64,000 nucleotides of DNA from Utricularia gibba (GCA_002189035.1 NEEC01000004.1:4960001-5024000); one strand, 5' to 3'; counted from the first letter of the stretch, positions 4,717-37,840 are shown. Translations and numbers: made by a program. The notes: a model not told the origin generated them from the sequence alone.

Positions 4717-6246
4717 CTACAGCTTCACAACTTCTGGAATGGGGACCGGATATTTATCAATGCAATCCTTCCAGGGACCGTCCACCGGAGTTTTAATCGT
4801 GCGGTTGCATTTCCAGATCGCACTATTGCATTTAAACCCACTTCCAAACCCGATTTGCCAAACCTTGTTACCCTTCTTCATCCTCCCTTTAGCCTCTATA
4901 TAAGCGAGCTCATACCAAATCGAAGACGACGACGTATTCCCGAACCGGTGGAGCGCCATACGGGATGGTTCGACGTGCTCCGGCGAGAGCTGGAGACTTT
5001 TCTGCAACTCATCGATCACTGCCCGGCCGCCGGCGTGGATGCAGAAGTGATCGAAGGCTTGTTTGAAGTCAGGGGTGTAGAGCTTCCATGTAGGGTCGAT
5101 CATCTTTCTTCCTATGAAGGAAAGCGCGAATAAGAGCTTCTCCGACGGTGGAAGTGCTAGAGGTCCAATAGTAACTATGTTCGACTTCAGCGCTCTTCCG
5201 GCGGTGACCATCAAGTCCTTTGACAAGTGTACGCCTACATGGCCTTTTGAGTCTTCTTGCTGGAATACGCATCTGTAGGAGCTGTCATCGGCACCCTTAT
5301 GGGTTCGGACGACGTGGAGGAGTTTGTACTTCGCACGGCGGCGGTCGCTGGCCTTGTTGGAGAGGAGCATGGCAGCGGCGCCCATGCGAAAGATGCAGAT
5401 GGGTAAGAGCATGGCTCTATCCGACCCTTCGTAGTTATTAGGAGTGATGATTTCCGTACTAACAACAAGTGCATAGGAATTGGGATGCGCCTGAAGCAGA
5501 TCCTTAGCTAAATCAATCGATATCACACCAGCGCTGCACCCCATCCCCGAAAGATTGAAGCTCTTGATGTTACTCCTGAGCTTGTACTTATTCACGATCA
5601 TCGCTGATAACGACGGCGTCGGCGAGAATATGCTGCAGTTGACGATCAAGATATCAATGTCCCTTGGCTTGAGACCTGTTTTCCTCATTAAATTATCGAT
5701 CGCAGAGAACATGACCAGTTCAGCTTCCTCCCGAGCATTCTCCATCGTTGGTTTGGGCGGGATGTAGTGTACCGCCGGTGGCAAGGATGTTTCTTCTCCA
5801 AGTCCCGATCGTTCCACAATCTTCATCATGAAATCCACCTCATCAGGGCTAAATCTCTGAACAAGGTGCGCATGTTCCATGAACGTGGCATAAGGAACTC
5901 TGAAAGTGATGGGCGGCTTGAAACAACCGAAGTCCACCAGATAAATAGAACGTGGCTTCGAAAGTAGATAAACGGTGGATGCGAGGACGATGGAAAAACC
6001 ATAGCATAGAATATAAACGGGATCCAAGTTTAGAGATTCCCAGACACCGATCATCCCCGCCACCCCGAGACGGTTGAGCTTGGCGGCCACGGCTCCGGCG
6101 AGCGGAATCAACAAGAGGGTGAAGAAGTTATTGATGGCATACTGGTAACACAACATGAGGTACTTCTTCTTCGTTGATGCTGAAAGGGGAGCCGCCATTG
6201 TGGTGGTTTCTGTTTGATCTTCCCTACCGGCGGCAAACGGGAGCAT
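4717..6246 (-). CDS. KCS6: 3-ketoacyl-CoA synthase, KCS5/6 (CER6)-like, copy 2, intact (509 aa)
   Basis: Two N-terminal hydrophobic segments. Catalytic motifs GMGCSAG, FCIHAGG and [12 protein letters not shown]-terminus [31 protein letters not shown] matches CER6/KCS6. Confidence 0.95.
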   Translation of the reverse strand: MLPFAAGREDQTETTTMAAPLSASTKKKYLMLCYQYAINNFFTLLLIPLAGAVAAKLNRLGVAGMIGVWESLNLDPVYILCYGFSIVLASTVYLLSKPRSIYLVDFGCFKPPITFRVPYATFMEHAHLVQRFSPDEVDFMMKIVERSGLGEETSLPPAVHYIPPKPTMENAREEAELVMFSAIDNLMRKTGLKPRDIDILIVNCSIFSPTPSLSAMIVNKYKLRSNIKSFNLSGMGCSAGVISIDLAKDLLQAHPNSYALVVSTEIITPNNYEGSDRAMLLPICIFRMGAAAMLLSNKASDRRRAKYKLLHVVRTHKGADDSSYRCVFQQEDSKGHVGVHLSKDLMVTAGRALKSNIVTIGPLALPPSEKLLFALSFIGRKMIDPTWKLYTPDFKQAFDHFCIHAGGRAVIDELQKSLQLSPEHVEPSRMALHRFGNTSSSSIWYELAYIEAKGRMKKGNKVWQIGFGSGFKCNSAIWKCNRTIKTPVDGPWKDCIDKYPVPIPEVVKL

Positions 6247-6795
6247 GATATTTAAAGACCAAAAGCAAAACCGAAGTTTTCCATTGCATTAAATGGAGAG
6301 TTGGGAGTTTGAATTCCAATCACTCGTTCCAACACAAAAGTATTTATTTATTTATTTATTTTTAACGAAAAATATATAGATATATTTTGATTATAAATAA
6401 AAAAATAAGTCTTACTTCTTACACACATCCAATTTGCTCCCTATGTTGGTTTAATTTCCATTCATGCCCCTACCTTGTGTTCCATATCATACTTATTTGC
6501 AAATGTAATAGCATTGTAATATAACCTATACAACTCACAAAATGCTCTAACCTATATCTAAAACATTCGATTTAATATATAACATTATTCATTTTATAAT
6601 ACAAAATAACGACAAAATGTATATTATCATTATTTCTCGAAACAAGTGATAAAATCAAACGGCAGCCTTGTTTTTTGTTTTTTTTATAACAACAACCACC
6701 CACTTCTACGATTATTAGTATCACTGTTGAGGTTGGTATCCAACATAAATGGATGTGGGGTTGTCTTCACCAATCAACCAGAAACAAATGATATC

Positions 6796-7015
6796 TGATT
6801 GTTATTTAAAATTTTTGAAACATATTTATATTTTTCAAAAAATAAAAATAATTTTGTTCTAAAACACTAACAATTATAAAAATAATTCTATCAAAAAATA
6901 CTTTTGAAATTATACTATAAAAGTTACTTTTGAAAAAGTAAATAATATGTTACTTTTAATTATTATTTTTACTTTTCTAAAATAATTTTAAAAAAGTAAA
7001 AATAGATTCTAGCTT
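6796..7015. mobile_element. AT-rich 220-bp insertion flanked by ATATC direct repeats (possible decayed MITE)
   Basis: Absent from the paralogous spacers at ~825 and ~38945. ATATC at 6791-6795 and 7016-7020. No clear TIR. Confidence 0.45.
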
Positions 7016-7440
7016 ATATCATACCACATCAACATATTTGTGTGTCCATCCAACTACTTGTACCATGTGTCACGCACAAACCTGGGGTCAACATGCACGA
7101 ACATTCACATAATGAGAGACATCTTTACCTTATGTTCGATTCCTGTTTTGTAATGAACGTACATAGAACATGATGTTACATCAGGCTCCTTTAGGGTTAC
7201 GCAGTACCTCTGAGTGGGTGTGAAATATGAGGTTACCTGCATTTAATTGTACATATCTGGCTTAGTATATAGTTTTAATGATTGTTAGTTAATGTGATTC
7301 TTCGTTTTTTCATTAAAACGAAAAAAATGTGCTAAAAATAACTAATTTCTGACCCATATATCATAGGATAATCAGATTTGTAAATAACTTGAATGAGAAG
7401 ATGATTTTTTTTTCTCAAAGTAGTGTTTGGTTCTTTTGCA

Positions 7441-8232
7441 ATAGTATGTGATTTTGTAAAAATGTTTGAAAATCAATTTTACAATTATATAGAGTGATTT
7501 CTACTTCAAAACAAGTAAAAAATTTATAAATATATTTTTTATTTCTAAAAAGAATACAGAGATGGGTTTCTATCTTATGAGAATCATTATTCGACCAAAT
7601 GAAATCCTAAAAAATAATGATAAATATGATCATATTTGTAAATGATCCCGAAACAATCTCAAATTTGATTTATTGTCATGTTTCTTTAAAATTATTCAAC
7701 ATTCTATTTCCCAATGATTTATTCTCTATAGTCATATTTCTTTATTATTTCGATGATTCCTAAAAGCTTTCAGGCTTAGATATGTTTTATGTAAGGATCT
7801 AATGAGTTGTCACACTTGATCCAACCATCTGGTGAGCACCCTCGTTGCACATTCTTCAATAAAAAAAAGTTTAATTGTGACAAGAAATTTAAAAATAGGG
7901 TAGCATGCATTATTAAGTTCGCCTGGTCGTCCCTAAAAATGACGATTATCCACCCTGAACGCGACCAAACACCAAAAACAATTTTGATTGGGCCGTCACG
8001 TAGAAGACCGTTCTTTCAACTAGTCCCCGATAGAAACATCAACATGATATCCCATCTTCCTAACTATTTGGTATTAAACCAAACAATCTCATATTAAGAT
8101 TAATCAGTTGCATCTAATTTTTTCTAATCATATCATTAATTTCTACATTTTAGAACATGAAATAACTTAGAAATAATTAAATCAAGGATGATGGACGCGT
8201 TTCGTAACATGAAGTGATAATCATATAGTATG
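7441..8232. repeat. Source segment of the permuted 784-bp copy, bounded by 8-bp ATAGTATG direct repeats
   Basis: ATAGTATG at 7441-7448 and 8225-8232. The same octamer forms the tail-to-head junction at 2008-2015. Confidence 0.9.
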
Positions 8233-9335: not shown

Positions 9336-9657
9336 TGAAAGAATAAATTTTTGGAAGAATCACAATGTTTTGATAGATAAAATTCACCACACAAATGTTA
9401 TAATCAAACTACAGATAAATAGAGGATTTTTGATAGTTTCCGATCCATAGTTTTTACCTTGACTGGTGCTCTTCATTTAGAAGGTTCTTCACTTTCCTTT
9501 AGCAGCATGCGGATTACTCTTCACTTTGCCACGATTGATGCTACTTGGGCCATTCTTCAATTTACCATATTCCAATAGAAAGAGTTCATCCTTATCTCCC
9601 CTCTCCTTATCACTCCTTTCCTCAATCTTATTACTTCCTTTAATCTCTCTTTCAACA
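9336..9657 (-). repeat. 3' LTR of the copia element (322 bp, TGTTG...TTTCA on the minus strand)
   Basis: TG...CA ends, preceded on the minus strand by the PPT AGTTTGAGAGAGGG (9658-9671). Bases 9337-9396 match 14374-14433 at 58/60. Confidence 0.85.
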
Positions 9658-9752: not shown

Positions 9753-12700
9753 TTAGTGTTGTGCTGAAATATGATGAGTTGTTAAATAGCCCAAAGCAAC
9801 CCTCTCTCGCACAAAGTGATAGTCAATCTCAACATGCTTACTTCGGGAGTGAAGAATAGGATTTACTGTCAAGTAGAGTGCACTCAAGTTGTCGCAATAG
9901 AGTCTTGGGGTTTCGTTGAGCATCACACGAATATCCTTCAAGATAAATTGTAGCCATGTAGCCTCAGCTGCAGCATGTGCCATTGCTCTATATTCAGCCT
10001 CTGTACTTGATCTGGACACCGTATGTTGTTTTTTTGAGCTCCAGGAGATTGGATTTTTTCCAAGGACACAATATCCCGTAGTTGCAACTTGCCCAATCAG
10101 CATCAGAGAAGATTTGTAGTTGTAGTGGTGAATCAATATAGAACGTGAGACCCAACTCCAGAGTCCCTTTGATATATCGTAGGATTCTCTCAGCCATGAT
10201 TTTGTGATATGCAGTTGGCGTATGCATAAATTGAGACACAAAGTTCACACTATATATGATATCTGGCCTCGTAAAGGTAAGGTATTGAAGCACTCCTACA
10301 AGTGCTCTGAAGGGAGTGGGATCAGTAAGAGTCTCATCATTTTTTGGGGCAGTAAACTTCGCTGCTTGAGGTGTCAATGCTGGTTTACAGTCACATAGAC
10401 CAAACCTGTGAAGAATAGATAAAGCATAGTGAGCTTGTGAAAGATGAATTCCACTTGTGGTTTTTACCACTTGAACGCCAAGAAAATATTGTAGGTATCC
10501 AAGGTCTTTCATAGCAAATTCCAAGGATAGTTGATCAATTAACTTGGATATCAATTTTGAGGATGACCCTGTAACAATTATATCATCAACATAAAGTAAT
10601 AAAATTAGTGTATCATTACCAACATATGAAATGAAAAGAGATGGATCTACAAGGCTGCAAAAAAATCCAATTTTTAAGAGAAAAGAGCTAAAGCGATCAA
10701 ACCATGCCCTTGGAGCCTGTTTTAGTCCGTACAATGCTCGGTTAAGTTTGCAAACATGTGTAGGAAAATGGATATCCTTCATACTTGGAGGTTGTTCCAT
10801 AAAAATATCCTCAATGATGTGTCCATGTAAGAAAGCATTCTTAACATCGAGTTGGCGTATTTCCCAGCCATTACTTACCCCAATTGACACAATAAGACAT
10901 ATGGTACCTGGGCGAATAACAGGAGAAAAAGTTTCACTATAGTCAATACCATCAATTTGATCATACCCTTTGGCGACAAGGCGAGCTTTTAGGCGATCTA
11001 GTGCTCCATCAGGTTTGAGTTTTGCTTTAAATACCCATTTGCACCCAATGATGTGTTGTGACTCACTCGTGGGACTAGCCTCCATGTATCATTGTCGTGG
11101 AGGGCACCCAGCTCTTCTTCCATGGCTTTTTCCAACCAGGATGTTGAAGTGCCTCTTGAACCGATCTTGGCTCTGCTGGAACTGAGTAATGCACTGCCAT
11201 CTGTAAGGCATACTTTGGGTTGGGTTTAAATATCCCACGTTGTGCTCTTGTTCTCATCCCATGTGTTCTCTGCATAGATAAAGAATCAAGAGATTGTGAG
11301 GGAGTTACCAATTCATTACGCGAGACTGGATCTAACGATGAAATTGCCTCCTCAACACTAGTTATGTTGTTACTGTCGGGTGAAGTGGTGGCAACTACAG
11401 TCTCCCTAGAGGGCATTTCAGTGGTCTGGTTGTTGGTCGAAGTGGTGACAGCCTCTACTCTTGTAGATTGTATTTCATCGACCTGGAGGGTGGCAATTTC
11501 ATCGACCTGGATAGTGGCAGCCTCTCGGTCTGGTGGTTCCTCGATGAGAATTTCCTCATCAACGCTACGAGCATCAGTAAAGTCTAGGCATTCTGTGGCG
11601 GTGTGTTCCCCATCGTACACGTGGTTTGCACCTTGTTGCTGATTTTCTGCATTTGCTCCCTGCTCCAGGCCTAAACCCAAAAACTGTTGCTGCTGCTGAT
11701 TGTCTGAAGTAGCAGTGGTATGATGATGAGACGGCAGCAGAGAGGCTTCTTCTCTCACCCCACCAGGAACAATTGTACTAGTGAATTCAGGCATCTCCGT
11801 TGGGATCTGTTCTTCAGTAGGTACATGATGGTTTATGACAGTAGGTGCTTGCAAATTTCATGCAGCTATCAGGGGACTGTTTTGATGAGGGGGTTCTCTA
11901 GCTGCTGCTCCCGTGGTGAGAGGTTCTGAGTTTTCATTTGACAAGTCCTGCGTCCAGGCATTAAAGATCTTAATGACCAGCTGTGAAGAGGGAGGTGATG
12001 AATTAAGAGGTGAACGAAATGGGAATGATTGTTCATCAAAGATAGCGTGACGAGAGATATGGATTTTTTTGGCTGCTGGGTCATAACATCGGTATCCCTT
12101 ATGGCTGTCGATGTACCCTACAAAGACACATAAAGCTGTTTTTGGTGAGAACTTGTTGCGTTTAGAGTCACATAAATAAGGAAAACATTTTGCACCAAAA
12201 ACTTGAAGACTTGAGTAATCTGGATTTGAATTAAAAAGCATGGAGTAAGGAGAGCCTCTTTTGAGAGAAGGGGAAGGTAGTCGATTCTGTAAGTAGATGA
12301 CTGTTGAAAAAGCTTCAACCCAAAATGAGAGTGGTACTCCACTGTGAAACATCATGGTCATTCCATGCTCTCGTATTGTACGATGCTGTCGTTCCACAAC
12401 GCCCATCTGTTCATGAGTGTAAGGGCAGGAGAAAAAATGTAACATTCATGTTTCTAAGAAGTGAGATCTGAGTGAGTGATTGACAAATTCCCCACCATTA
12501 TCTGTTTGAAGAATTTTAATTTTTGCATTAAACTGCCTAGCTATATAACTTTCAAACTGATAAAAAATGCCAGTAAAATCACTTTTTTTTCTTAATGGAT
12601 AAAACCATAAAAAACGAGAATAATCATCAACAAGACAGGCATAATACAAAAAACCATTACGAGATATAACAGGTGCAGGTCCCCAAAGATCACAATAAAC

Positions 12701-13312
12701 CCTTTCAAACATATTTTTTGAAACTGAATCTGAATTAGAAAATGGAAGTTTGGATAACTTCCCATACTAGCAGCTGTCACAAAAAATAGATGAACTTGGT
12801 TTAATCACATTGATTAACCCTTTATTTTTGAGAAGAGACACCATTGACCCCTGTGAATGTCCAAGTCGTTGATACCAAATCTCAGGCAAACATGACTTAA
12901 AACGCAGGGAAAAGAAAGCTTGTGGAGAGTGTTTATGGACATATAAACCACCACTACGTCTCCCGGTTGCTCGATGAGTTCCCGTGTGTAGATCCTTAAT
13001 AAACAAATCAATATCAGTGAATTAACAATTAATTGGTTGCTGGGCTGTCAACTGCGAGACTGAAAGTAAATTCTTTGTCAGTTTTGGGACATACAAAACA
13101 TTCTCTAGAGAGATGGACGAGTTATTTTGCTGTAAAGTAGAATTACCAATACCATGTATCGGTAAATGGGAACCATCTCCAATAACAACACTATCTTCAG
13201 CTGTATATGGGTATAATGCAACACGAGTTGTACCTGCCATGTGATTCGTGGCTCTTGTATCAGCGGTCCAATCCGTTTTGGTGAGGGAGTTATCTAGAGT
13301 GAGCGAAGCCAA
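9753..13312 (-). pseudogene. copia pol (PR, INT, RT, RNase H) broken into fragments
   Basis: ORFs 13022-13312, 12767-13006, 12446-12712, 11858-12445, 11075-11854, 9994-11085 and 9753-10241 carry successive pol motifs separated by in-frame stops or frameshifts. Confidence 0.9.
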
Positions 13313-13435
13313 GGCTTGAGGCAGAGTCTCGTTTTCACTTGCAGGTGGGGGTGACGGTCCTGGGAGACGCCAACAGATTTTGGCTATGTGGCCTTGTAAA
13401 TTACAGATTTGACATACCTCATTTCTATATAACTC

Positions 13436-14290
13436 TCATTCCGTAGACATCATCCTGCGTTTTCCCGGAGGTGGAGGTGGTGCACGTCCCTGTCTATCAC
13501 CACTATTAGAGCGCTGCTGTGACGAATTTTGAGTCAACATTGGTGACTGTTGACGTTGACCAGAGAACCCGCGCCCATCTGAGGTGAACTTGGAAGTAGG
13601 GGATTGTCCTTGTCGTTGGGCTGTGAATGCCATGGCCGTGTTTTGTTTTTCAATCTCTTCGGTGAGTTGTCTTCTCATTTCAAAACTCAATAGCTGTGGT
13701 ATGAGATCCCGATAGCTGGGGCATGGTTCTTTTAGCATGATTGTTGAGAATGCATCGTACCCAGTTTCTAGACCTGTGAGAAGATAATATACCTTCTTTC
13801 TATCGGGAATAATATCACATATTGCTGCCAAATCATCACAGATTGTCTTGAACTTCATAAGGTACCCATCTAGTGACTGATCCGAGCGCTTGCGTGTCTG
13901 CAAGAGTTGGTAGCAAAGAGCATATCGTCGTTCTTCAGATCGTTGGGCGTAAGCATCCTGGAGGGCTGTCCAAACAGCTGCTGATGTGTCACACCCAATA
14001 ATGAGTGGCCAGGAATTTTCAGAAATTGTTCCAAGTATCCAGCTTCTGAGTAGACGATCAGCGGTTTTCCATTGAACGTATTCATTGGTGAGGGTGGGCT
14101 GTGACTGAGGTTCTTGACCTTCAGGCGCAGATACGAATTGACTTGGTGCTGTAATCTCTCCAGTAAGGTAGCCGTAGAGACCTTGGTTTTCGGCGAGCCC
14201 AATCGCCATTTCTCTCCACAAACTATAATTTGATTGGGTGAGTTTGATGGTGATGAAATTGCTTACATTGATGGAATTTGTAGTGGCCAT
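13436..14290 (-). pseudogene. copia gag (UBN2-type); premature TGA before the zinc knuckle
   Basis: MATTNSINVSNFITIKLTQSNYSLWR...DRLLRSWILGTIS. After the stop at 13436 the same frame continues ELYRNEVCQICNLQGHIAKICW. Confidence 0.9.
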
Positions 14291-14362
14291 CGTACTAGGT
14301 TGGATGAGCGGAAGCAAGGGTTGCGAAGACCACAAACGACGATTGAAAAATTCAATCGCTCA

Positions 14363-17116: not shown

Positions 17117-18645
17117 CTAGAGCTTCACAACTCTTGGAATGTTGACCGGATACTTATCAATGCAATCCTTCCAGGGACCGTCGACCGGAGTTTTGATCGT
17201 GCGGTTGCATTTCCAGACCGCACTGTTGCATTTAAATCCACTTCCAAACGCGATTTGCCAAATCTTGTTGCCCTTCTTCATCCTCCCTTTAGCTTCTATG
17301 TAAGCGAGCTCATACCAAATCGAAGACGAGGAGGTATTCCCGAACCGGTAGAGCGACATACGCGAAGCTTCAACGTGCTCCGGGGAGAGCTCGAGGCTTT
17401 TCTGGAGCTCATCGATCACCGCCCGGCCACCGGCGTGGATGCAGAAGTGATCGAAAGCTTCTTTGAAGTCAGGGGTGTAGAGCTTCCAGTTAGGGTTGAT
17501 GATCTTTCTTCCTATGAGGGATAGTGCGAATAAGACCTTCTCCGACGGCGGAAGTGCTACAGGTCCAAGGGTAGTTATGTTCGACTTCAACGCTCTTCCG
17601 GCGGTGGCCATCAAGTCCTTTGACAAGTGCACGCCTACTATGCCTTCGGAGTCTTCTTGCTGGAACACACATCTGTAGGAGCTGTCATCGGCACCCTTAT
17701 GGGTTCGAACGACGTGGAGGAGTTTGTACTTGGCACGGCGGCGATCGCGGGCCTTGTTGGAGAGGAGCACTGCAGCGGTGCCCATGCGAAAGATGCAGTT
17801 GGGTAAGAGCATGGCTCTCTCCGAACCTTCGTAGTTATTAAGAGCAATGATTTCCGCACTCACAACAAGTGCATAGGAACTGGGATACGCCTGAAGCAGA
17901 TCCTTAGCTAAATCAATCGAAATCACACCAGCGCTGCACCCCATCCCCGAAAGATTGATGCTCTTGATGTTACTCCGGAGCTTGTACTTATTCACGATCA
18001 TCGCTGATAACGACGGCGTCGGCGAGAACACGCTGCAGTCGACGACCAAAATATCAATGTCCCTTGGTTTCAGCCCTGTTTTCCTAATCAAATTATCGAT
18101 CGCAGAGAACACGAGCAATTCAGCTTCCTCCCGAGCTTTCTCTATCGTTGGTTTAGGCGGGATGTAGTGCATCGCCGGTGGCAAGGATGTTTCTTCTCCA
18201 ATTCCCGATCGTTCCACAATCTTCTTCATGAAATCCACGCTCTCAGGGTGAAATCTCTGAAGAAGGTGAGCATGCTCGATGAACGTGGCAAAAGGCACTC
18301 TTAAACTGAAGGGAGGCTTGCAACAAGCGAAGTCCACCAGATAAATAGATCGCGGCTTGGAAAGTAGATAAACGGTTGCTGCGAATATGATGCAGAAAAC
18401 AGCGCATAGAATATAAATGGGATCCAAGTTTAGAGATTTCCAGGCCCCGATCATCCCCTCCACCCCCAGACGCCTGAGCTTGACTGCCACAGCCGCAGCC
18501 AGAGGAATCAACAAGAGGGTGAAGAAGTTATTGACAACATGCTTATAACACACTTTGAGATACTTGTGCTTCGTCGATGCAGAAGGGGAGCCGCCATTCT
18601 GGTGGTTTCTGTTTGATCTTCCCTACCGGCGGCAAACGGGAGCAT
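17117..18645 (-). pseudogene. KCS6: KCS copy 3: full length, with a 1-nt deletion after codon ~21 (pseudogene or assembly indel)
   Basis: ATG at 18645 to stop at 17117 is 1529 nt, versus 1530 in copy 2. Plus strand reads AGAAGGGG where copy 2 has TGAAAGGGG (18581-18588). The rest of the ORF is open with all catalytic motifs. Confidence 0.8.
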
Positions 18646-19290
18646 GATCTTTATAGACTCAAAGTCTCAAACCAAAACCAGGGCTTCCCAGTGCATTAAA
18701 TGATGGGTCAGGAGTTGCTTGTTGCTACGACTGTCATAAATGAGGAAGAAACCCTGACTAGTTCCTTATATAACGATTGAATCAATTGTTTTTTTTATAA
18801 AAAAATTAAAATGCTTTTATGAACAACATGAAATCTTAATTCAATTATAATTGAATAATGAGTAAATCATGATTAAATTTTTATTTAGTCATCAATTTTG
18901 ACTTTCATTAATTTCACTAATATACTTAATGTCATATAAATCAAACATGGCATCAAACGAGATCATAAGTTTGGTATCCAACATAAATGCATGTGGGGTT
19001 ATGTTCAACAAACAACAACAAACAAAGGCTATGTCATGCCACATCAACATATTTATATATGTATTCATCATGCACCTTCTATCATGTGCCTTCACGAGGT
19101 CGGACCTCTTCACACACACAACTGGGGTACTTAATCCAAGTAATAATAATAATAATAATAAAAATTCATGTTGAAATGATTATCAGAATTTCCCTTCTCT
19201 CCAGAAATTTGTTGCTGTTGTTCCAGAAAATGTTTTATGTTGCACCCCTGTCGGTAATGAATGCAATGCAAAAAATAATAATTAAAAAAA

Positions 19291-19294
<4 letters not shown>

Positions 19295-19320
<26 letters not shown>
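19295..19320. repeat. (AC)13 microsatellite
   Basis: Read directly; shorter in the paralogous spacer at ~15865. Confidence 0.95.
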
Positions 19321-19321
<1 letters not shown>

Positions 19322-21815: not shown

Positions 21816-23297
21816 CTACAGCTTCACAAATTCTGGAATGGAGACTGGATATTTATGAATGAAATCCTTCCAGGGACCGTCGACCGGAGTTTCGATCGTG
21901 CGGATGCATTTCCAGATCGCACTATTGCATTTAAACCCACTTCCAAACCCGATTTGCCAAACCTTGTTACCCTTCTTCATCCTCCCTTTAGCCTCTATGT
22001 AAGCGAGCACATACCAAATCGAAGACGACGCCGTATTCCCGAACTGGTGGAGCGTCATACGGGAAGGTTCGACGTCCTCCGGCGAGAGCTGGAGGGTTTT
22101 CTGGATCTCATCGATCACCGCCCGGCCGCCAGGGTGGAAGCAGAAGTGATCGAAAGCTTGTTTGAAGTCAGGGGTGTAGGGCTTCCATTTCGGGTTGATC
22201 ATCTTTCTTCCTATTAGGGATAGCGCGAATAAGAGCTTCTCCGATGCCGGAAGTGCTATAGGTCCAATAGTAGTTATGTTCGACTTCAACGCTCTTCCCG
22301 CGGTGACCAACAAGTCCTTTGACAAGCGCACGCCTACGTGGCCTTCGGAGTCTTCTCCCTTGAATATGCATCTGTAGGAGCTGTCATCGGCACCCATATG
22401 GGTTCGGACGACGTGGAGGAGTTCGTACTTCGAACGGCGGCGATCGCGGGCCTTGTTGGAGAGGAGCATGGCAGCGGCGCCCATGCGAAAGATGCAGACG
22501 GGTAAGAGCATAGCTCTCTCCGAGCCTTCGTAGTTACTGAGAGTCAAGATTTCCGCACTCACAACAAGTGCATAGGAATTGGGAAGCGCCTGAAGCAGAT
22601 CTTTAGCTAAATCAATCGAAATCACACCAGCGCTGCACCCCATCCCCGAAAGATTGAAGCTCCTGATGTTACTCCTGAGCTTGTACTTATTCATGATCAT
22701 CGATGATAACGACGGCGTCGGCGAGAACACGCTGCAGTTGACGACCAAAATATCAATGTCCCTTGGCTTGAGCCCAGTTTTCGTCATCAAATTATCGATC
22801 GCAGAGAACATGACCAATTCAGCTTCCTCACGAGCTTTCTCCATCGTTGGTTTGGGCGGGATGTAGTGAATCGCCTCTGGCAAACATGCTTCTTCTCCAA
22901 TTGCTGATCGTTCCAGAATCTTCATCATGACAGCCATGCTATCAGGGTGATATCTCTGAAGATGGTAAGCATGTTCCATGAACCTGGAAAAAGGCGCTCT
23001 TAAAGTAGAGGGAGGCTTGCAACAATCAAAGTCCACCAGATAAATTGATCGTGGCTTCAAAAGTAGACAAACGGTTGCTGCGAAGATGATGGAGAAAACA
23101 GCGCATGGAATATAAATGGGATCCAAGTTTAGAGATTTCCAGACACCGATCATCCCCTTCACCCCCAGACACCTGAGCTTGACTACCACGGCGGCAGCCA
23201 CAGGAATCAACAAGAGGGTGAAGAAGTTATTGACGTCATACTGGTAGAACAATTTGAAGTACTTCTTCTTCGTTGATACAGAGGTGGGAGCAGCCAT
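21816..23297 (-). CDS. KCS6: 3-ketoacyl-CoA synthase copy 4, intact from the second ATG (493 aa), most divergent copy
   Basis: Motifs GMGCSAG, FCFHPGG and LHQFGNTASSS; C-terminus ...YPVSIPEFVKL. The upstream ATG at 23335 is out of frame after a 10-nt deletion. Confidence 0.9.
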   Translation of the reverse strand: MAAPTSVSTKKKYFKLFYQYDVNNFFTLLLIPVAAAVVVKLRCLGVKGMIGVWKSLNLDPIYIPCAVFSIIFAATVCLLLKPRSIYLVDFDCCKPPSTLRAPFSRFMEHAYHLQRYHPDSMAVMMKILERSAIGEEACLPEAIHYIPPKPTMEKAREEAELVMFSAIDNLMTKTGLKPRDIDILVVNCSVFSPTPSLSSMIMNKYKLRSNIRSFNLSGMGCSAGVISIDLAKDLLQALPNSYALVVSAEILTLSNYEGSERAMLLPVCIFRMGAAAMLLSNKARDRRRSKYELLHVVRTHMGADDSSYRCIFKGEDSEGHVGVRLSKDLLVTAGRALKSNITTIGPIALPASEKLLFALSLIGRKMINPKWKPYTPDFKQAFDHFCFHPGGRAVIDEIQKTLQLSPEDVEPSRMTLHQFGNTASSSIWYVLAYIEAKGRMKKGNKVWQIGFGSGFKCNSAIWKCIRTIETPVDGPWKDFIHKYPVSIPEFVKL

Positions 23298-24970
23298 TCT
23301 TGTGGCTTCTGTTTATCGGCGGCAAACGGGAGCATGGTATTTATAGACTCAAACAAAAACCAGGGTTTCCCATTGCATTAAATGATGGTTAGTGAGTTGT
23401 TGCTGCTTTCATTTACTCTGTTTATTTTTTAAGACTTCCCATTTCATCAAACAATGGCTAGATATTCGAAGACAAAATGTGTGTCATCATTACTCTTCCA
23501 AAATGGCTTGTCTGTCAAAAGTAATTTCCATGTAATAAAATCATATCGAACCTTGCTTGTAATATCATCAACCAATTCAAAAGTTACTACTAAAATTGTT
23601 AGAACTCGATTGGTAGGGCATTAAAGAATACATTATGGTAAATAACATTTGTTAAAATGACACGTTTGGTGAGCAGTAGTATTCCTTAATATTATTATGA
23701 GAAGAGGATTTATTGGAAGAGAGTAAGTTTTTTTATTATTATTATGATATGCCTTGGAATCAATAGAACACATTTTATTACATTTCATATCAAGAAAAAT
23801 GATATGAGAAAGATGACGACTATTATTGAGTTGGCTTTATTGTGCCTATAATGTACACCTATCCACCACAAACACCACTAAACAACGAAACGACAGCAAT
23901 TATCATATGGACAACTTTTTACGGGTTTATATATAATTTATGAACGATCAATAATTACGTATGTAATAAAATAATATATTTAATTATTTAAATTAATAGT
24001 ATTGGATAATATCTTCATTCATTATTATGAAAAAAATATATAATATATATGATAATTGCTTTTATCGTAAAAAAAGCACAAAAAGTTTCTGAAAAAAAGT
24101 GGAGACATCCATTGTTCAATAATTTCAGTCTAGCCATTTCGTTAATAATTGCATGGTATTATCAAAAAAGATATTTATTGCATGATTAGGTTTGAATCCC
24201 CATTATTTATTTGTCCTGATTATTATTATAACCGTATTTTTTATTTAAAAGGGGTGATTAATTTTTAATATTTTAATGGGAGTTAATATATCATTCAAAT
24301 CTAGGTTTATCCCAAGGGATGCAGGGCATACTATTAATAGGAGGGTCTAATCACCCACGTTTATTTTGCAAAAAGAGGCATGTGGTGGGCATGTGGGTCA
24401 GGGTTATGTCTTGCTGGGAGCCAATGGCTACAGACATTACGAAAGTGGAGTAGGGCTTCTACTTTAAACTCTATATTTAAACTTTTCACATTAATAAAAT
24501 ACAAGGAAAAAAGGGGGCAATCGACCCTATGCATTCCGAATGTTTTTTAAAAATGGTACGATTAGTTATTAACGTTTAATTAAAATGATATAGTTAGTTT
24601 TTATTAGCCTATTTAGTCAACATATTTGATGTATCTATTATATTTAGTTTTAGATCTTTTTTCTTTAATTCATTTTTATTTATTTATTTATTTATTAATA
24701 TTAATTATAATTGATCTTCAATATTTAAAAACAGTACATATTTGATCTCAATTATTGTATAATTTGATAAAATTAATTTTTATTTCTTTCGACCACCGCC
24801 GCTGCCGACAATTGCTCATCACCTCCGCCCATGCCACTGTCGGTCGATCGTCGCCACTACCTGTCGCTTGTTGGGTGTTCAAGTGCCCGTTGCTCGTGCC
24901 ACTGCCATAACCCGTCGGCAGTGTTCGGCGGCAATCGATTGACGGTCGATCGGCACTAGGTTCGTGGCAG

Positions 24971-26014: not shown

Positions 26015-27001
26015 CTAGAGCTTCACAGCCTCTGGAATGGAGACCTTCCAGGGACCGTCCACCGGAGTTTTGATCGCGCGGTTGCATTTCCAGATCGCAC
26101 TACTGCACTTAAACCCCCTTCCAAACGCGATTTGCAAAATCTTGTTGCCCTTCTTCATCCTCCCTTTAGCTTCTATGTAAGCGAGCTCGTACCAAATGGA
26201 AGACGAGGACGTGTTCCCGAACCGGTAGAGCGACATACGCGAAGCTTCAACGTGCTCTGGGGAGAGATCGAGGCTTTTCTGGAGCTCATCGATGACCGCC
26301 CGGCCGCCGGCGTGGATGCAGAAGTGATCGAAAGCTTGTTTGAAGTCAGGGGCGTAGATCTTCCAGTTAGGGTTGATGATCTTTCTTCCTATAAGGGATA
26401 GTGCGAATAAGACCTTCTCCGACGGCGGAAGTGCTATAGGTCCAAGGGTAGTTATGTTCGACTTCAACGCTCTTCCGGCGGTGGCCATCAAGTCCTTTGA
26501 CAAGTGCACGCCTACTTTGCCTTCGGAGTCTTCTTGCTGGAACACACATCTGTAGGAGCTGTCATCGGCACCCTTATGGGTTCGGACGACGTGGAGGAGT
26601 TTGTACTTGGCACGGCGGCGATCGCGGGCCTTGTTGGAGAGGAGCACTGCAGCGGCGCCCATGCGAAAGATGCAGTTGGGTAAGAGCATGGCTCTCTCCG
26701 AACCTTCGTAGTTATTAAGAGCAATGATTTCCGCACTCACAACAAGTGCATAGGAACTGGGATGCGCCTGAAGCAGATCCTTAGCTAAATCAATCGATAT
26801 CACACCAGCGCTGCACCCCATTCCCGAAAGATTGATGCTCTTGATGTTACTCCTGAGCTTGTACTTATTCACGATCATCGCTGATAACGACGGCGTCGGC
26901 GAGAACACGCTGCAGTCGACGACCAAAATATCAATGCCCCTTGGTTTCAGCCCTGTTTTCCTAATCAAATTATCGATCGCAGAGAACACGAGCAATTCAG
27001 C
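26015..27001 (-). pseudogene. KCS6: KCS copy 5, 5'-truncated pseudogene
   Basis: KCS homology ends at ~27001 (AELLVFSA), so the first ~180 codons and the proximal promoter are missing. A 21-nt deletion removes DCIDKYP near the C-terminus, and GSGFKCNS has become GRGFKCSS. Confidence 0.9.
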
Positions 27002-28541: not shown

Positions 28542-29401
28542 CTACAGCTTCACAACTTCTGGAATGGAGACCGGATATTTATGAATGCAATCATTCCAGG
28601 GACCGTCGACCGGAGTTTTGATCGTGCGGTTGCATTTCCAGACCGCACTGTTGCATTTAAACCCACTTCCAAACCCGATTTGCCAAACCCTGTTACCCTT
28701 CTTCATCCTCCCTTTAGCCTCAATGTATGCGAGCTCATACCAAATGGAAGACGACGTATTCCCAAATCGGTGGAGCGCCATACGGGATGGCTCCACGTCC
28801 TCCGGCGAGAGCTGGAGGCTTTTCTGCACCTCATCGATCACCGCCCGGCCGCCGGAGTGGAAGCAGAAGTGATCAAAAGCTTGTTTGAAGTCAGGGATGT
28901 AGGGCTTCCATTTAGGGTTGATCATCTTTCTTCCTAATAGGGATAGCGCGAATAAGAGCTGCTCCGACACCGGAAGTGCAAGAGGTCCAAGAGTGGCTAT
29001 GTTCGACTTCAATGCTCTTCCGGCGGTGACCCTCAAGTCCTTTGACAATTGTAACCCTACTATGCCTTCGGAGTCTTCTTGCTGGAAGACGCATCTGTAG
29101 GAGCTGTCATCGGCACCCATATGGATTCGGACGACATGGAGGAGTTTATACTTCGCACGACGGCGATCGCCGGCCTTATTGGATAGGAGCACGGCAGCGG
29201 CGCCCATGCGAAAGATGCAGTTGGGTAAAAGCATGGCTCTCACCGAGCCTTGGTAGTGATTGGGAGTGATGATTTCCGTAGTCACAACAAGCGCACACGA
29301 ATTGCGATGCACCTGAAGTAGATTCTTAGCTAAATCAACCGATATCACACCAGCGCGCACCCCATTCCCCCAAGATTGAAGCTCTTGATGTTACTCCTGA
29401 G
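28542..29401 (-). pseudogene. KCS6: KCS copy 6, 3' half ([14 protein letters not shown]...PEVVKL)
   Basis: Continues the 5' half across the 29402-31253 insertion. There is a 1-nt deletion immediately after the catalytic Cys codon (TGC GC GCT), and GNTSSS lacks one Ser. Confidence 0.9.
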
Positions 29402-30378
29402 TGTTGAAATTCAAGATTCGATGAATTGGGCAAGCATCCACGTGAACCTTAAGTACACAAGAAACGTGGATTACAATAGAAAAGATTAGGTCCAACCTAG
29501 TATTAGTGATCTGTAGTTTATTATATACTAGATTATTTCACTGTCATTTTCCGATGTGGGATTATGTATTGTAACACCCGCCCTCAAGTCGAACTAGTCT
29601 GTGATCCGGTGATGACTTGCTTCTTTTTTTTTTATGATTGTAGGTAGTGCTCAGGTCATAGGTCGATCCAATTTTGTCACCTAAGCCCAATGCATCTCCT
29701 TTTTTTTTTTAACCGGACCTCAGACCAATACGAAATCCATCTTGGCCACCCAAGCCGTGCCGCAAGGCAAGCGCCATTTTCATTCTTTGATGTGGGATTG
29801 TGTATTAACACACCCGCCCTCAAGTCGAACTGGTCTGTGATCTGGTGATGACTTGCTCTTTTTTTTTTTTGTGATTGTAGATAGTGTTCGGATCATAGGT
29901 CGATCTAATTTTTTGTCACCTAAGTCCAATGCATCTCCTTGTTTTTTCCTTTTTTTTTTAACCGGAGAGGCAAACGCTCTGATACCATGTTGAAATTCAG
30001 GATCCGATGGGTCGGGCGAGCACACATGTGAAGCCCAAATACACAAGAAACGTTGATCATAATAGAAAAAATTAAGCCTAACCTATTATTAGTGATCTGT
30101 AGTTTCTTATATACTAGATTATTTCACTGTCATTTTTCAAACTGGTCTTTGATCCAGTTAAGACTTGTTTTTTTTTTTTTTTGTGTGATTTGTAGGTAGT
30201 GCTCGGATTATAGATCAATCTAATTTTTTGTTGCCTAAGCCCAATGCATCTCCTTGATTTTTTTTTTTTTAACTGGAACTCTCACCAGAACTAAACCCAT
30301 CTTGGTCACCCAAGCCATGCCGTGAGGCAAACGCTCTGTTGAAATTTAAGATCGGATGGGTCGTGCGAGCGTGCACGT
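29402..30378 (-). mobile_element. Tandem array of TRIM-like miniature LTR elements (175-bp LTR, ~200-bp noncoding internal region)
   Basis: Complete LTR at 29402-29576 (TG...CA). PPT-like CCCGCCCTCAAG at 29577 and ~29813. PBS GCTCTGATACCA at 29976-29987. Further LTR copies or fragments at ~29775-29810, 29988-30150 and 30337-30378. Three similar internal segments. Confidence 0.85.
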
Positions 30379-30379
30379 C

Positions 30380-31205
30380 CTTGTCGAGATTGAGTGTGAG
30401 GTTGTTGATGAGTCATTGGAAGAGGTTGCTGTTGTTGTTGTTGAGGGAATTGGCTGCGTTGTGCTTGAAACCCACGACCGTCAGAGGTAAAGCGAGCTGT
30501 TGACGGTGCACTCTTGTATTGGGTTTGATATGCCATAGGGGAAGAGAGTGAGTTGTACTGCCGTTCAATGTCTTCATTGATTTGTTTTCGCATCTCAAAA
30601 CTTTGCAGTTGTGAGATTAGATCCCTATACGAGGGACGTGGATATTTGAGCATGGAAGTGGTGAACGCCTCGTAGCCAGATCCAACACTTGTGAGAAGGA
30701 AGTAAACCTTCTCATCTTCAGCGACTGGGTCTTCAATAGCAGCTAATTGGTCACAGATGGACTTAAATTTACGGAGATATTCATCCAGGTTTTGATCTGC
30801 GCGTTTTCAGTTCTGAGTGAATTGATACCTCAAGGTATAACGACGCTCCTCAGATTTTTGGGCATATGCATCTCGAAGAGCAGACCAAAGATTGGCGGCT
30901 GTTTCACAACCGATAACCAGTGGCCATGATTCTTCAGAAATTGTACCTAAGAGCCAGCTACGCAAGAGACGGTCTGATTGTTTCCACTTTATGAATTCTG
31001 TAGATGGGTTTGCTGGTGTAGATGAATCCTGCACTCCTGGTTGGAGATCAAATTCTGGTGGTGGTGTTGTCTCACCGGTTAGATGGCCGGAGAGACCTTG
31101 GCTATCTGCAAGCCCAATAGCCATTTCTTTCCAGAGCGGGTAATTGCTGCTGGTTAGTTTGACGGTGATGAAGTTTGACACATTAATAGCATTTCCGGTT
31201 GCCAT
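30380..31205 (-). pseudogene. Second copia gag remnant, fused to the TRIM-like array
   Basis: MATGNAINVSNFITVKLTSSNYPLWKEMAIGLADSQG... is clearly homologous to the gag at 13436-14290. One in-frame TGA at 30807-30809; the same frame continues KRADQNLDEYLRKFKSICDQL...MLKYPRPSYRDLISQLQSFEMRKQ. Confidence 0.9.
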
Positions 31206-31253
31206 GGTGGAGGGAAGGAAGGATGTGCGGAAGCGTGAATGTGAGAGGAAGGA

Positions 31254-31923
31254 TGAGCTTGTACTTATTCACGATCATCGCTGATAACGACGGCGTCGGC
31301 GAGAACAGGCTGCAGTTGACGACCAAAATATCAATGTCCCTTGGCTTGAGCCTAGTTTTCCTTATCAAATTATCGATTGCAGAGAACATGACGAGCTCCG
31401 CTTCCTCACGAGCTCTCTCCATTGTTGGTTCGGACGGGATGTAGAGAACTGAGTCTGGAAATGATGTTTCTTCTCCAAGTCCCGATCTTTCCAGAATCTT
31501 CTTCATGAAATCCACCCTTTCAGGGTGATTTCTATGAAGATGGTGGACATGTTCGACGAACCTGTCAGAAGGAATTCTGAGGGTAAAGGATGGCTTGTAA
31601 CAAGCGAAGTCCACCAGATAAATCGGTCGTGGCTTCGAAAGTCGATAAAGGGTTGCTGCCACGATCATGGAGAAAACAGCGCATAGAATATAAATGGGAT
31701 CCATGTTTTGAGATTTCCAGACCCCGATCATCCCCTCCACCCCGAGACGGCTAAGCTTCACGGCCACGACCGCCGCCAGAGGAATCAACAAGAGGGTGAG
31801 GAAGTTATTGACGACATGCTGATAACACAGTTTGAGGCACTTGTGCTTCGTCGATGCAGTGGCGGGAGCAGCCATTCTGGTGGTTTCTGCTAGGTCTTCC
31901 CTATCGGCAGCAAACGGGATCAT
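31254..31923 (-). pseudogene. KCS6: KCS copy 6, 5' half (MIPFAADRED...[10 protein letters not shown])
   Basis: ORF 31183-31956 is KCS up to NKYKL and then reads into the retroelement leader. The ATG at 31923 is homologous to the starts of the other copies. Confidence 0.9.
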
Positions 31924-34980: not shown

Positions 34981-35126
34981 ATTAAGCACCTTTTTTTTTT
35001 CCTTTCAAGAAACAAACACCACTCTTAGCATACGAACGTGCAGTACATGTCACTAGACAAAGCATTTCTCCTTTTATCTTTCTATTTTTGCTGTAATAAA
35101 GTTTTTTATTTTCGAAAAAGCTGCAG

Positions 35127-35694
35127 CAAGCGGAAAGAGGCGTCGGAGAGCCACCGGAGCGAGGCTGACCGAGGATCAGGCCAACATGCTTGAGCGCGAC
35201 GTCTTCGAGGACGCATCACTGGAGACACACAGAAAGGAGATGGTGGCACAGGAATTAGGGTTGCACCACCGCCAGGTTGCGGATTGGTTCCAGAACAGGA
35301 GGGTGCGCCACCGCACCAAAAAGCTCGAGGAGGAGGAGTTCTTCAGGCCCCACTCCCTACGTGAAACCACCGTCGTCGAGAAATGCCACCTCGAAATGGA
35401 GGTTCGTCTTTGCCATCTCACTGCACCATTCACTCACACTGATATCAGTATTCATTGGTTACTTAAACTCCCATCATCAATATAATGACACTACCGTCGC
35501 CCTAGTTCCAGATTCCGCGGCTGAGGGAAAAACTGCGTGAAGCGGAAAATGAAATCCAAAAGTTTTCAGTAGGCGTTCCATCTTTTCCAACGGAAGAAGC
35601 ATCTCTGCACGCGGGATTTGAGTTTGATGACATCTTTGCCCCTGGGCTCTTCAGTGTATTGCCGCATGTAGCAAATAGCCATTACCAGGTGTAA
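35127..35694 (+). pseudogene. HD-Zip class I (ATHB21/40/53-like) gene, copy A; first exon not identified, degenerate
   Basis: RLTEDQANMLERDVFEDASLETHRKEMVAQELGLHHRQVADWFQNRR...HETTVVEKCHLE-like sequence. Intron 35402-35511, then IPRLREKLREAENEIQK. V>D in helix 3, a Leu>Pro change in the zipper and a frameshifting deletion near the C-terminus relative to copy B. Confidence 0.75.
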
Positions 35695-36310
35695 ATTAGT
35701 CTTTTCAGATCTGATGATTAGGAAATGTGATTAGGATATTATCAAGTGATTAGGTACTCATAATTTCATAATTAGTAAACATGAAATTGGAATGTTTGGA
35801 ATTCTGCAATTAGAAAAAATATAATGGATTATTGGATGATGAAATTCAATCATGCATTACATAATAAAATTTTATTTCATTATTATTATTAGTAGTATTA
35901 GATATATAGATATATAATTGCGAAATTCTTAATTAATGAATATTATTTAATATAAAATTAATTTTGCATGTCACACTTACGTGACATTTTTCAAACTTTT
36001 GCGATTTATGTCATCTATAATACACTATTTCGAACATCTTTTCAAGCAGATCGCGTTCGTTTATGAACGAAGGTCTGATCATCGGAAAATTTTCTGGAGC
36101 TGCAAAAGTGGTCGGGTAATAATTGGCCGGTGGAGGAAAGATAACCTGAAGATTGCAAATCAACTGTGTTGCGTCACTGCGGAGTAGAGACGAGATTTGG
36201 TGGAAAACCAAACAAGGTAAAAACGTAAAAGCACACATCTTTATTTATTTTCCAGCAAAGAAAGTATTCTAGAATTCGACGGAGTATCGGGCTTCACGGG
36301 CCTGCACGAG

Positions 36311-37840
36311 CTAGTGCTTCCCAGCTTCTGGAATGGAGACCGGATATTTATGAATGCAATCCTTCCAGGGACCGTCGACCGGAGTTTTGATCGTGCGGAT
36401 GCATTTCCAGACCGCACTATTGCATTTAAACCCACTTCCCAACCCGATTTGCCAAACCTTGTTACCCTTCTTCATCCTCCCTTTAGCCTCTATGTAAGCG
36501 AGCTCGTACCAAATGGAAGACGAGGAGGTATTCCCGAACCGGTGGAGAGCCATACGGGATGGTTCGACGTCCTCCGGCGAGAGCTGGAGGCTTTTCTGCA
36601 CCTCATCGATCACCGCCCGGCCGCCGGAGTGGATGCAGAAGTGATCGAAAGCTTGTTTGAAATCAGGGATGTAGGGCTTCCATTTAGGGTTGATGATATT
36701 TCTTCCAATTAGGGATAGCGCGAATAAGAGCTGCTCCGACGCCGGAAGTGCTAGAGGTGCAATAGTACTTATGTTTAACTTCAGCGCTCTTCCGGCGGTG
36801 GCATTTAAATCCTTTGACAATTTTAACCCCGATATGCCTTCGGAGTCTTCTTGCTGGAATACGCATCTGTAGGCGCTGTCATCGGCACCCGTATGGGTTC
36901 GGACGAGGTGGAGGAGTTCGTACTTCGCACGGCGGCGATCGCGGGCCTTGTTGGAAAGGAGAACTGCAGCGGCGCCCATGCGAAAGATGCAGTTGGGCAA
37001 GAGCATGGCTCTCACCGAGCCTTGGTAGTGATTGGGAGTGATGATTTCCGTAGTCACGACAAGTGCATAGGAATTGGGATGCGCCCGCAGCAGATCCTTA
37101 GCTAAATCAACCGAAATCAGACCGGCGCTGCACCCCATTCCCGCAAGATTGAAGCTCTGGATGTTACTCCTGAGCTTGTACTTATTAACGATCATCGCTG
37201 ATAACGACGGCGTCGGCGAGAACATGCTGCAGTTGACGACCAAAATATCAATATCGGTTGGCCTCAGCCCTGTTTTCCTTATCAAATTATCGATTGCAGA
37301 AAACATGACCAGCTCAGCTTCCTCACGAGCACTCTCCATCGTTGGTTTGGGCGGGATGTAGAGAAGTGAGTCTGGAAAAGATGTTTCTTCTCCAAGTCCC
37401 GATCGTCCCAGAATCTTCTTCATGAAATCCACCCTTTCAGGGTGATTTTTATGAAGAAGGTGGACATGTTCGACGAACCTGTCAGCAGGAACTCTGAGGG
37501 TAAAGGGTGCCTTGAAACAATCGAAGTCCACCAGATAAATAGCTCGTGGCTTCGAACGTCGATAAAGGGTTGCTGCCAGTATCATGGAGAAAACAGCGCA
37601 TAGAATATAAATGGGATCCAAGTTTAGAGATTTCCCGGCCCCGATCATCCCCTCCACCCCGACACGGCCGACCTTGGCGGCCACGGCTCCGGCCAGCGCA
37701 ACCAACAAGAGGGTGAAGAAATTATTGACAACATGCTTGAAACACACATTGAGGTACTTCTGCTTCCTCGATGCAGAGGCGGTCACAGCCATTCCGGTGG
37801 TTTCTGTTTGATCTGCCCTATCGGCGGCAAACGGGAGCAT
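36311..37840 (-). CDS. KCS6: 3-ketoacyl-CoA synthase copy 7, intact (509 aa)
   Basis: Motifs AGMGCSAG, FCIHSGG and [11 protein letters not shown]; C-terminus ...YPVSIPEAGKH. Closest to copy 6. Confidence 0.95.
   Translation of the reverse strand: MLPFAADRADQTETTGMAVTASASRKQKYLNVCFKHVVNNFFTLLLVALAGAVAAKVGRVGVEGMIGAGKSLNLDPIYILCAVFSMILAATLYRRSKPRAIYLVDFDCFKAPFTLRVPADRFVEHVHLLHKNHPERVDFMKKILGRSGLGEETSFPDSLLYIPPKPTMESAREEAELVMFSAIDNLIRKTGLRPTDIDILVVNCSMFSPTPSLSAMIVNKYKLRSNIQSFNLAGMGCSAGLISVDLAKDLLRAHPNSYALVVTTEIITPNHYQGSVRAMLLPNCIFRMGAAAVLLSNKARDRRRAKYELLHLVRTHTGADDSAYRCVFQQEDSEGISGLKLSKDLNATAGRALKLNISTIAPLALPASEQLLFALSLIGRNIINPKWKPYIPDFKQAFDHFCIHSGGRAVIDEVQKSLQLSPEDVEPSRMALHRFGNTSSSSIWYELAYIEAKGRMKKGNKVWQIGLGSGFKCNSAVWKCIRTIKTPVDGPWKDCIHKYPVSIPEAGKH

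Follow-up and report, generated by a model that had tools for sequence, protein, structure and literature searches.

What has become of a wax elongase gene that was repeatedly duplicated in one place is the question raised by a stretch of 64,000 nucleotides (nt) of Utricularia gibba DNA (the window), which carries seven genes of the KCS5/6 (CER6) type, numbered c1 to c7 along the array. An earlier note on this DNA had proposed that the copies keep the catalytic triad, vary the residues lining the acyl pocket, and form a lineage-specific set of elongases with differing chain-length or substrate ranges. The reading favored here, with reasonable though far from complete confidence, is that these genes descend from KCS6/CER6, the condensing enzyme of a wax elongase, and make up a birth-and-death array in tandem, evolving fast under purifying selection that is relaxed though not absent. 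Two less probable readings were weighed against it. One is adaptive neofunctionalisation, in which selection would have favored the copies as a lineage-specific elongase toolkit whose members would differ in chain-length or substrate range, might work without CER2 and would make unusual waxes or lipids. The other is wholesale decay, in which the whole array would be the redundant remains of a duplicated KCS6 locus, three open frames would survive for lack of time and no copy would yield a relevant enzyme.

Array Members and Reading Frames

The seven genes were intronless and were located by tblastn with c7 and from the list of open reading frames (ORFs). They lay head-to-tail, all on the minus strand, with a spacing of about 4.7 kb. 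Reading frames were intact in c2, c4 and c7 only. Copies c2 (4717-6246) and c7 (36311-37840) had 509 codons from an upstream in-frame ATG and 493 from the canonical one (at 6198 in c2), and c4 (21816-23297), the most divergent copy, was an intact ORF of 493 codons. No indels occurred across the 493 codons of these three copies, which argues against wholesale decay. Only the N-terminal 93 codons of c1 (8-283) were present, the remainder lying past the window start (63% identity over residues 1-93 by tblastn with c7).

The other three copies carried disabling lesions. Copy c3 (17117-18646), otherwise an open frame of 478 codons, had lost 1 nt after codon 4 (near 18585); both ATGs were retained, yet the deletion left them off the long frame, and c3 is likely a pseudogene, though transcribed. 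Copy c5 (26015-27001) was a truncated pseudogene that ran from residue ~175 to the end, without its first ~174 codons and with a 7-codon deletion near the C-terminus, and it was 95% identical to c3. The two-helix N-terminal anchor region was missing from c5 and out of reach of the ATG of c3. Copy c6 was interrupted after ...NKYKL by a 1.85-kb insertion (29402-31253) with CTCA at both junctions and a copia-gag fragment inside (Pfam Retrotran_gag_2 on 30807-31205), which separated a 5' part (31254-31923; residues 1-223, from tblastn and the ORF) from a 3' part (28542-29401, from DNA alignment and translation). It had also lost 1 nt immediately 3' of the catalytic Cys codon (GGMGC) and one codon of the FGNTSSSS motif; its halves were spliced together for alignment only, with N filling the 1-nt deletion. 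The description of the copies as full-length in the earlier note thus held for c2, c4 and c7, but not for the frameshifted c3 nor for c6, both frameshifted and split. Disabling of three of the six assessable copies is what wholesale decay would produce, and the loss of half of the array also counts against a selected toolkit.

Family Placement and Overall Divergence

The best PDB match of c2 was citrus KCS6 (9lgy; E = 1.5e-244, gapless), and the match to maize CER6 (9uu3) was nearly gapless. Because the alignment of c2 with citrus KCS6 had no gaps, citrus numbering equals c2 numbering plus 3, and it is used throughout. The match of c2 to the solved full-length KCS6 was gapless from residue 5, and N-terminal hydrophobic stretches were visible by eye. 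The Pfam domains FAE1_CUT1_RppA (PF08392; E 1e-126 to 1e-135) and ACP_syn_III_C (PF08541; E ~1e-13 to 1e-14) were found in c2, c3, c4 and c7, with FAE1_CUT1_RppA E values of 1.7e-135 for c2 and 6.7e-130 for c7. The best 120 database matches were all of the KCS5/6 type, and no database protein was more than 73% identical to c2. By exact-sequence look-up, the c2, c4 and c7 proteins and that of a GRAS gene further along the window were absent from a collection of 15 billion proteins.

An IQ-TREE tree was built with 59 sequences, including the six assessable copies, with Closterium and a 50%-identical KCS as outgroups. The window copies formed one clade (support 100/100) on a stem of 0.527 changes/site, nested in asterid KCS6; the position next to Cuscuta (support 98/71) may reflect long-branch attraction. 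The CER6-like identity assigned earlier was upheld by this nesting and by the gapless match to 9lgy. Identity to Arabidopsis KCS6 was 64-69% for the copies and 79-82% for the banana or Forsythia ortholog (monocot and Lamiales, respectively). A comparison set of 114 KCS5/6 orthologs of 480-510 residues was assembled by word search from monocots, magnoliids and eudicots. Of the catalytic-domain positions, 273 were conserved at 95% or above; among these, the copies deviated at 27-46 positions (46 in c4) and the orthologs at a median of 2 and a maximum of 9, an excess well outside chance expectation that favors wholesale decay.

Substitutions in the Acyl Tunnel and at the Cofactor Interface

The catalytic triad (Cys224, His391, Asn424) was present in every copy covering those sites, as had been claimed. 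The motif variants listed in the earlier note were all present in the copies named. The STEIITPN segment was SAEIIALN in c3 and also in c5, SAEILTLS in c4, and TTEIITPN in c6 and c7. LLPNCLF was LLPICIF in c2 and LLPVCIF in c4, with CIF replacing the ortholog CLF in every copy. The His motif was HPGG in c4 and HSGG in c6 and c7, and the Cys motif AGMGC in c7 and GGMGC in c6. The segment after the membrane anchors read YATFMEHAHL in c2, FSRFMEHAYH in c4 and ADRFVEHVHL in c7. That these neighboring positions are normally very conserved was borne out: the motif-variant positions were 97-100% conserved in the 114 orthologs (S220, S250, T251, T255, N270, L272 and A392, 100%; P256 and N257, 99%).

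Experimental structures of the enzyme with its cofactor, citrus KCS6-CER2 (9lgy; PMC12716393) and maize CER6-GL2 (9uu3; PMC12674111), were solved only in 2025. The kinked acyl tunnel of citrus KCS6 is lined by V104, T108, F109, H112, L142, I146, L193, I254, Y258, L268, P269, F273 and I326; activity was abolished by F109N, L142N, L268N and F273N, I146N affected longer chains only, and T108W, H112W and Y258W capped products at C26, C24 and C28, respectively (PMC12716393). Salt bridges with CER2 involve R103, E111, H112, R114 and K495, and hydrogen bonds T108, H112 and Y148 (PMC12716393). Maize CER6 adds I115, H145, P149 and F256 to the tunnel, and T107A and Y146A abolished GL2 binding (PMC12674111). 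In poplar, helix-4 (PtCER6 106-118) and position 277 (CER6 Y258, the ruler residue) are the main specificity determinants; the CER2-like5 effect needs helix-4, and smaller ruler residues give longer products (PMC9574513).

Mapped on these structures, the post-anchor variable segment corresponded to helix-4 (residues 106-118), the STEIITPN-Y loop held I254 and Y258, and the LLPNCLF segment held L268, P269, L272 and F273. Tunnel residues F109, H112, L268, P269 and F273 and coenzyme A (CoA) contacts R133, R264 and V397 were unchanged in all copies covering them, and R129K and L272I, present in every copy, were conservative changes at CoA-binding residues. The core CER2/GL2 contacts R103, E111, H112, Y148 and K495 were likewise retained in every copy covering them. 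The further contacts T108 and R114 (96-97% T and R in orthologs) were not conserved in the array: T108R occurred in c4, c6 and c7, R114H in c2, c3, c6 and c7, and R114Y in c4. The ruler residue 258, Y or F in 97% of orthologs, was N in c2-c5 and H in c6 and c7. L142F and H147L occurred in c6 and c7, and residues 104, 116, 146, 193, 254 and 326 were altered in various copies.

By intact copy, c2 had Y258N, R114H and N270I and kept T108 and HAGG. Copy c7 had T108R, R114H, L142F, H147L, Y258H, S220A, S250T and A392S. The changes in c4 included T108R, R114Y, V104A, I254L, T251A, P256L, N257S, N270V, A392P and E433V, among others.

Among c2, c4 and c7, variable sites were more frequent in the tunnel (10/16) than in the rest of the catalytic domain (99/396; odds ratio 5, p = 0.002), and the enrichment persisted when limited to positions conserved at 90% or 95%. 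Helix-4 was also enriched (10/13 vs 99/399, p = 1.6e-4) and, with the next few residues, made up the 13-residue window with the most variation in the protein. The earlier suggestion that the variable segments line the acyl pocket was in this way supported, since they coincided with the tunnel, helix-4 and ruler residues of the citrus, maize and poplar studies, and variation was concentrated near the pocket rather than spread evenly. This roughly 5-fold concentration on experimentally defined specificity determinants is a point in favor of adaptive neofunctionalisation.

Some 15 replacements inferred for nonpolar sites of the tunnel were all to A, I, L, V, M or F, against an expectation of about 60% (about 40-80%) hydrophobic outcomes for random single-base nonsynonymous changes in the same codons. 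The uniformly hydrophobic outcome indicates that a hydrophobic tunnel was still selected while its shape changed. Retention of this hydrophobicity with the catalytic core fits an adaptive origin, and the same uniformity, together with the kept triad, most CoA contacts and most proximal tunnel residues, is difficult to accommodate under wholesale decay.

Selection Tests

Pairwise ratios of nonsynonymous to synonymous change (dN/dS, or omega) among the copies were 0.27-0.76, compared with 0.12 for canonical KCS6 of Forsythia and Fraxinus (Oleaceae) at similar dS (0.22). The ratio was 3-5 fold above that of canonical KCS6 along the whole protein, and reached 0.45-0.90 vs 0.04 in residues 248-330; the strong purifying selection typical of the KCS5/6 clade was thus not found in the array. 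A selected toolkit would not lead one to expect omega raised in every protein region instead of just near the tunnel.

Likelihood estimates of omega were obtained with our own GY94/F3x4 code. Global omega was 0.46, and a free-ratio model fitted better (p = 0.002-0.013). Terminal-branch omega was below 1 in c2 (0.38, p < 0.001) and c7 (0.52, p = 0.015), and also in c6 (0.26) and c5 (0.25), and was 1.0-1.3 in c4. Purifying selection on c2 and c7 agrees with an adaptive origin; values below 1 on these two branches and also on the broken c6 and c5 point to selection until recently, against wholesale decay. The low branch omegas of c5 and c6 mean that both were inactivated recently. Under the nearly neutral model M1a, about 55% of codons had omega 0.1 and 45% omega 1; the latter fraction, and an omega near 1 in c4, are on the side of decay. 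Addition of a positive class (M2a) gave no gain over M1a (p 0.5-0.6), contrary to what adaptive neofunctionalisation would predict.

Branch-site tests yielded one marginal result, in c4 (2dlnL 3.0-3.4, p about 0.03-0.04 uncorrected, omega2 about 3; top sites I254L and Q317G). It would favor adaptation, I254L being a tunnel residue, but it was lost after correction for six tests, and the tests were null on the other five branches (c6/c7 stem, c7, c2, c6 and c3/c5 stem). Adaptation is not shown by the selection tests. An estimate of stem-branch omega with lamiid outgroups was dropped, between-family dS being saturated. Private codon changes of c4 were 47 nonsynonymous vs 10 synonymous. Given the observed private changes, the chance of no stop arising under neutrality was about 0.10-0.12 (about 0.10 for c4), and the open frame of c4 was therefore rejected as proof of selection; that an open frame is such weak evidence is compatible with decay.

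At sites separating c2/c3 from c6/c7, c4 was c2/c3-like over most of its first ~1000 nt; the c6/c7 state was more frequent past nt ~1060 and was also found at the T108R codon (AGG). Such a mosaic suggests that members of the array exchanged sequence by gene conversion or unequal crossing-over. Recombinant sequences are a known source of false positives, and the c4 branch-site result loses further weight on that account.

Transcription

Parts of 17117-23297 were present in runs of three studies. Transcription was checked with contigs from four of them (X1, X2, X5 and X6) over 17350-23349, in c3 and c4 only. Contigs from X1/X2 (one study) and X5 (a second study) covered 17350-18706 (c3) and 21714-23347 (c4), and X6 (the third study) gave one contig, on part of c3 only. 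No contig from any of the four runs fell in the 2.8-kb c3-c4 spacer (18750-21549). Several contig pieces of 300-485 nt matched with zero mismatches, including pieces of 307 and 429 nt on c3 (X1/X2). Contigs on gene bodies but not on the spacer form the pattern of transcript assemblies, and c3, despite its frameshift, is transcribed, as is the divergent c4. Expression of the most divergent intact copy, the absence of which would have counted against the proposal of the earlier note, agrees with that proposal and favors an adaptive origin. Transcription alone is no proof of function, because the frameshifted c3 was transcribed just like c4, as decay would also allow.

The 5' leaders of c3 and c4 (18666-18706 and 23347-23418) were so alike that the c4 leader contig also fitted c3. 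An apparent backward joint of 4682 nt at this point was rejected as a rearrangement and attributed to paralogy; the loose end of the contig matched 23389 onward.

Upstream ATGs and Neighboring Features

Each of the six 5' ends, all on the minus strand (c1 236-283, c2 6199-6246, c3 18599-18646, c4 23298-23335, c6 31876-31923 and c7 37793-37840), had a conserved upstream ATG ~48 nt 5' of the canonical one, and the sequence between the two was conserved as well. This ATG was in frame in c1, c2, c6 and c7, adding 16 residues (MLPFAA...), and out of frame in c4. Short upstream ORFs at about -91 and -86 were common to the 5' ends of the copies. In c4, an upstream ORF of 42 codons (23209-23335, minus strand; from alignment and a scan for upstream ATGs) started at the conserved upstream ATG (context ACCATGC), was shifted in frame by a 10-nt deletion, and overlapped the canonical start codon. 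This overlapping, out-of-frame ORF speaks against c4 as a selected elongase, as do its 10 private changes where orthologs are invariant. The sequence TATAAATA just 5' of the conserved upstream ATG was considered as a functional TATA box; this is unlikely, since contigs reached more than 100 nt further upstream. A retrogene origin was rejected: in Forsythia, Fraxinus, Primulina and Coffea the canonical KCS6 gene also has a single exon, and because canonical lamiid KCS6 genes are intronless too, the copies need not be retrogenes.

Coding remnants of a Ty1/copia retrotransposon (9753-14335, minus strand; gag, integrase and reverse transcriptase; Pfam RVT_2 6e-67 and Retrotran_gag_2) lay between c2 and c3 and broke the regular spacing of the array. 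An ORF fragment encoding a homeodomain (35186-35485, plus strand; Pfam Homeodomain, 7e-9), HD-Zip-like, lay between c6 and c7. Beyond the array was a GRAS gene, SCL15 (46933-48531, minus strand), with best matches in core Lamiales at identities of at most 66%, which places the host in a core-Lamiales lineage with no closely related annotated genome. The last exons of a G-box bZIP gene of the MFMR/bZIP_1 type (46201-46555, plus strand) stood tail-to-tail with it. Past SCL15 were an ORF with a ZF-HD dimerisation domain (52417-52932, plus strand) and one with a NAC (NAM) domain (55366-56106, plus strand). The neighbors of the array were transcription-factor genes, not lipid genes, and there was therefore no sign of a metabolic gene cluster.

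The tail-to-tail order of bZIP and SCL15 was also found in Paulownia fortunei and Phlomoides rotata; in both, no called gene lay within 10 kb on the side of SCL15 facing away from bZIP, the side opposite to that of the array in the window. KCS6 and SCL15 were on one chromosome or contig in Erythranthe guttata, Lonicera macranthoides, Oldenlandia, Phlomoides, Forsythia, Fraxinus, Olea and Striga, separated by about 18-50 gene models as judged from locus-tag numbers. Because of this linkage in several asterids, the ancestor of the array may have been a KCS6 of an ancestral KCS6-SCL15 neighborhood.

Interpretation

The evolutionary signal of the array is one of relaxed constraint with a retained core in c2 and c7; adaptation is not demonstrated. 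Under the favored birth-and-death reading, the lineage evolved fast after its split from canonical KCS6 (stem 0.53 changes/site) and is now under strongly relaxed purifying selection. The preserved core comprises the triad, most CoA-binding residues, most proximal tunnel residues and the CER2 contacts R103, E111 and H112. Divergence, both from canonical KCS6 and from copy to copy, fell on helix-4, the ruler Y258 and the distal tunnel (residues 104, 116, 142, 146, 147, 193, 254 and 326), the parts that set the upper chain-length limit and the action of the CER2/GL2 cofactor in experiments. The essential L142 is Phe in c6 and c7, an exception to the kept proximal tunnel.

Copies c2 and c7 probably still work as condensing enzymes in the fatty-acid elongase of the endoplasmic reticulum (ER), and their substitutions make a shifted chain-length limit and a weakened or changed dependence on a CER2-like partner likely. 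Copy c4 is transcribed and most likely drifting toward loss, and c3, c5 and c6 are pseudogenes of recent inactivation. The array is ordinary in kind, as birth-and-death arrays go, and its specificity is likely altered: an altered chain-length limit and weakened CER2 coupling are predicted, T108R being predicted to weaken binding. The stronger proposition, that c2 and c7 (perhaps also c4) are working elongases uncoupled from CER2 or rewired through T108R, R114H/Y and helix-4, with the ruler opened to Asn or His and new chain-length limits, is doubtful.

Several points weigh against the birth-and-death reading or weaken its support. The tunnel-site enrichment fits both released constraint and diversifying selection and cannot separate them; the tunnel list is short (16 positions), and shared ancestry makes the per-copy Fisher tests non-independent. 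The signs of gene conversion in the c4 mosaic weaken the tree-based estimates of omega. Copy c7 may be impaired: 10 of its private changes hit residues that never vary in the 114 orthologs, and its L142F falls at the site where L142N kills activity in citrus. The RNA nature of the runs was inferred from the coverage pattern, not recorded, and the runs bear on the c3 and c4 region only.

Adaptive neofunctionalisation is the more probable of the two alternatives and is still unlikely. It has a precedent in the tandem PtKCS1 cluster of poplar, in which the product length and saturation of paralogs are set by helix-4 and position 277 (PMC9574513). What remained of the lineage-specific elongase set proposed earlier was the change at specificity sites; its adaptive character was not supported, with three of six copies disabled and omega raised throughout. 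Wholesale decay is less probable still, given the selection recorded on the terminal branches.

The array offers CER6-derived paralogs in a natural series, with variation at helix-4, T108, R114, Y258 and the distal tunnel and a conserved catalytic core. If c2 and c7 are active, they would provide a test in natural sequences of the published rules on tunnel volume and hydrophobicity, and could furnish variants for engineering very-long-chain fatty-acid length; if they are inactive, the array would be a well-resolved case of a duplicated wax gene decaying by birth and death. Working copies uncoupled from CER2, if real, would be a natural experiment for the tunnel-engineering rules drawn from the cryo-EM structures.

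Comparison with Known Systems

The array was related to type III polyketide synthases through the Pfam domains Chal_sti_synt_N and Chal_sti_synt_C, matched weakly but significantly, and through PDB matches to chalcone synthase (CHS) and PKS11/PKS18. The CHS N-terminal domain aligned over the stretch containing the STEIITPN and LLPNCLF segments, and the CHS region aligned to them presumably holds the SEIT loop and Phe215. HPGG, as in c4, is the usual CHS form of the His motif. Type III polyketide synthases are soluble polyketide cyclases, whereas KCS are membrane-anchored, acyl-CoA elongating enzymes.

With KCS6/CER6/CUT1 (and KCS5/CER60), the 3-ketoacyl-CoA synthase that serves wax synthesis in the ER elongase, the array shared Pfam domains, length and triad. 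It also shared the CoA contacts R133, R264, L268, F273 and V397, the proximal tunnel residues F109, L268, P269 and F273, and the intronless structure. It was 64-73% identical to any KCS6, whereas angiosperm orthologs share about 80% or more, and it differed further in its largely rewritten helix-4, its tandem seven-copy state and its half complement of pseudogenes.

The closest parallel is the PtKCS1 cluster on chromosome 10 of Populus trichocarpa (PMC9574513), which is likewise tandem and transposon-rich, with paralogs that differ mainly in helix-4 and the ruler. The differences within PtKCS1 were shown to alter product length, saturation and the response to CER2-like proteins (PMC9574513). 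PtKCS1 falls in a different KCS clade (59% identity to PtCER6), and five of its members proved active, whereas the Utricularia array derives from the CER6 clade and is half disabled.

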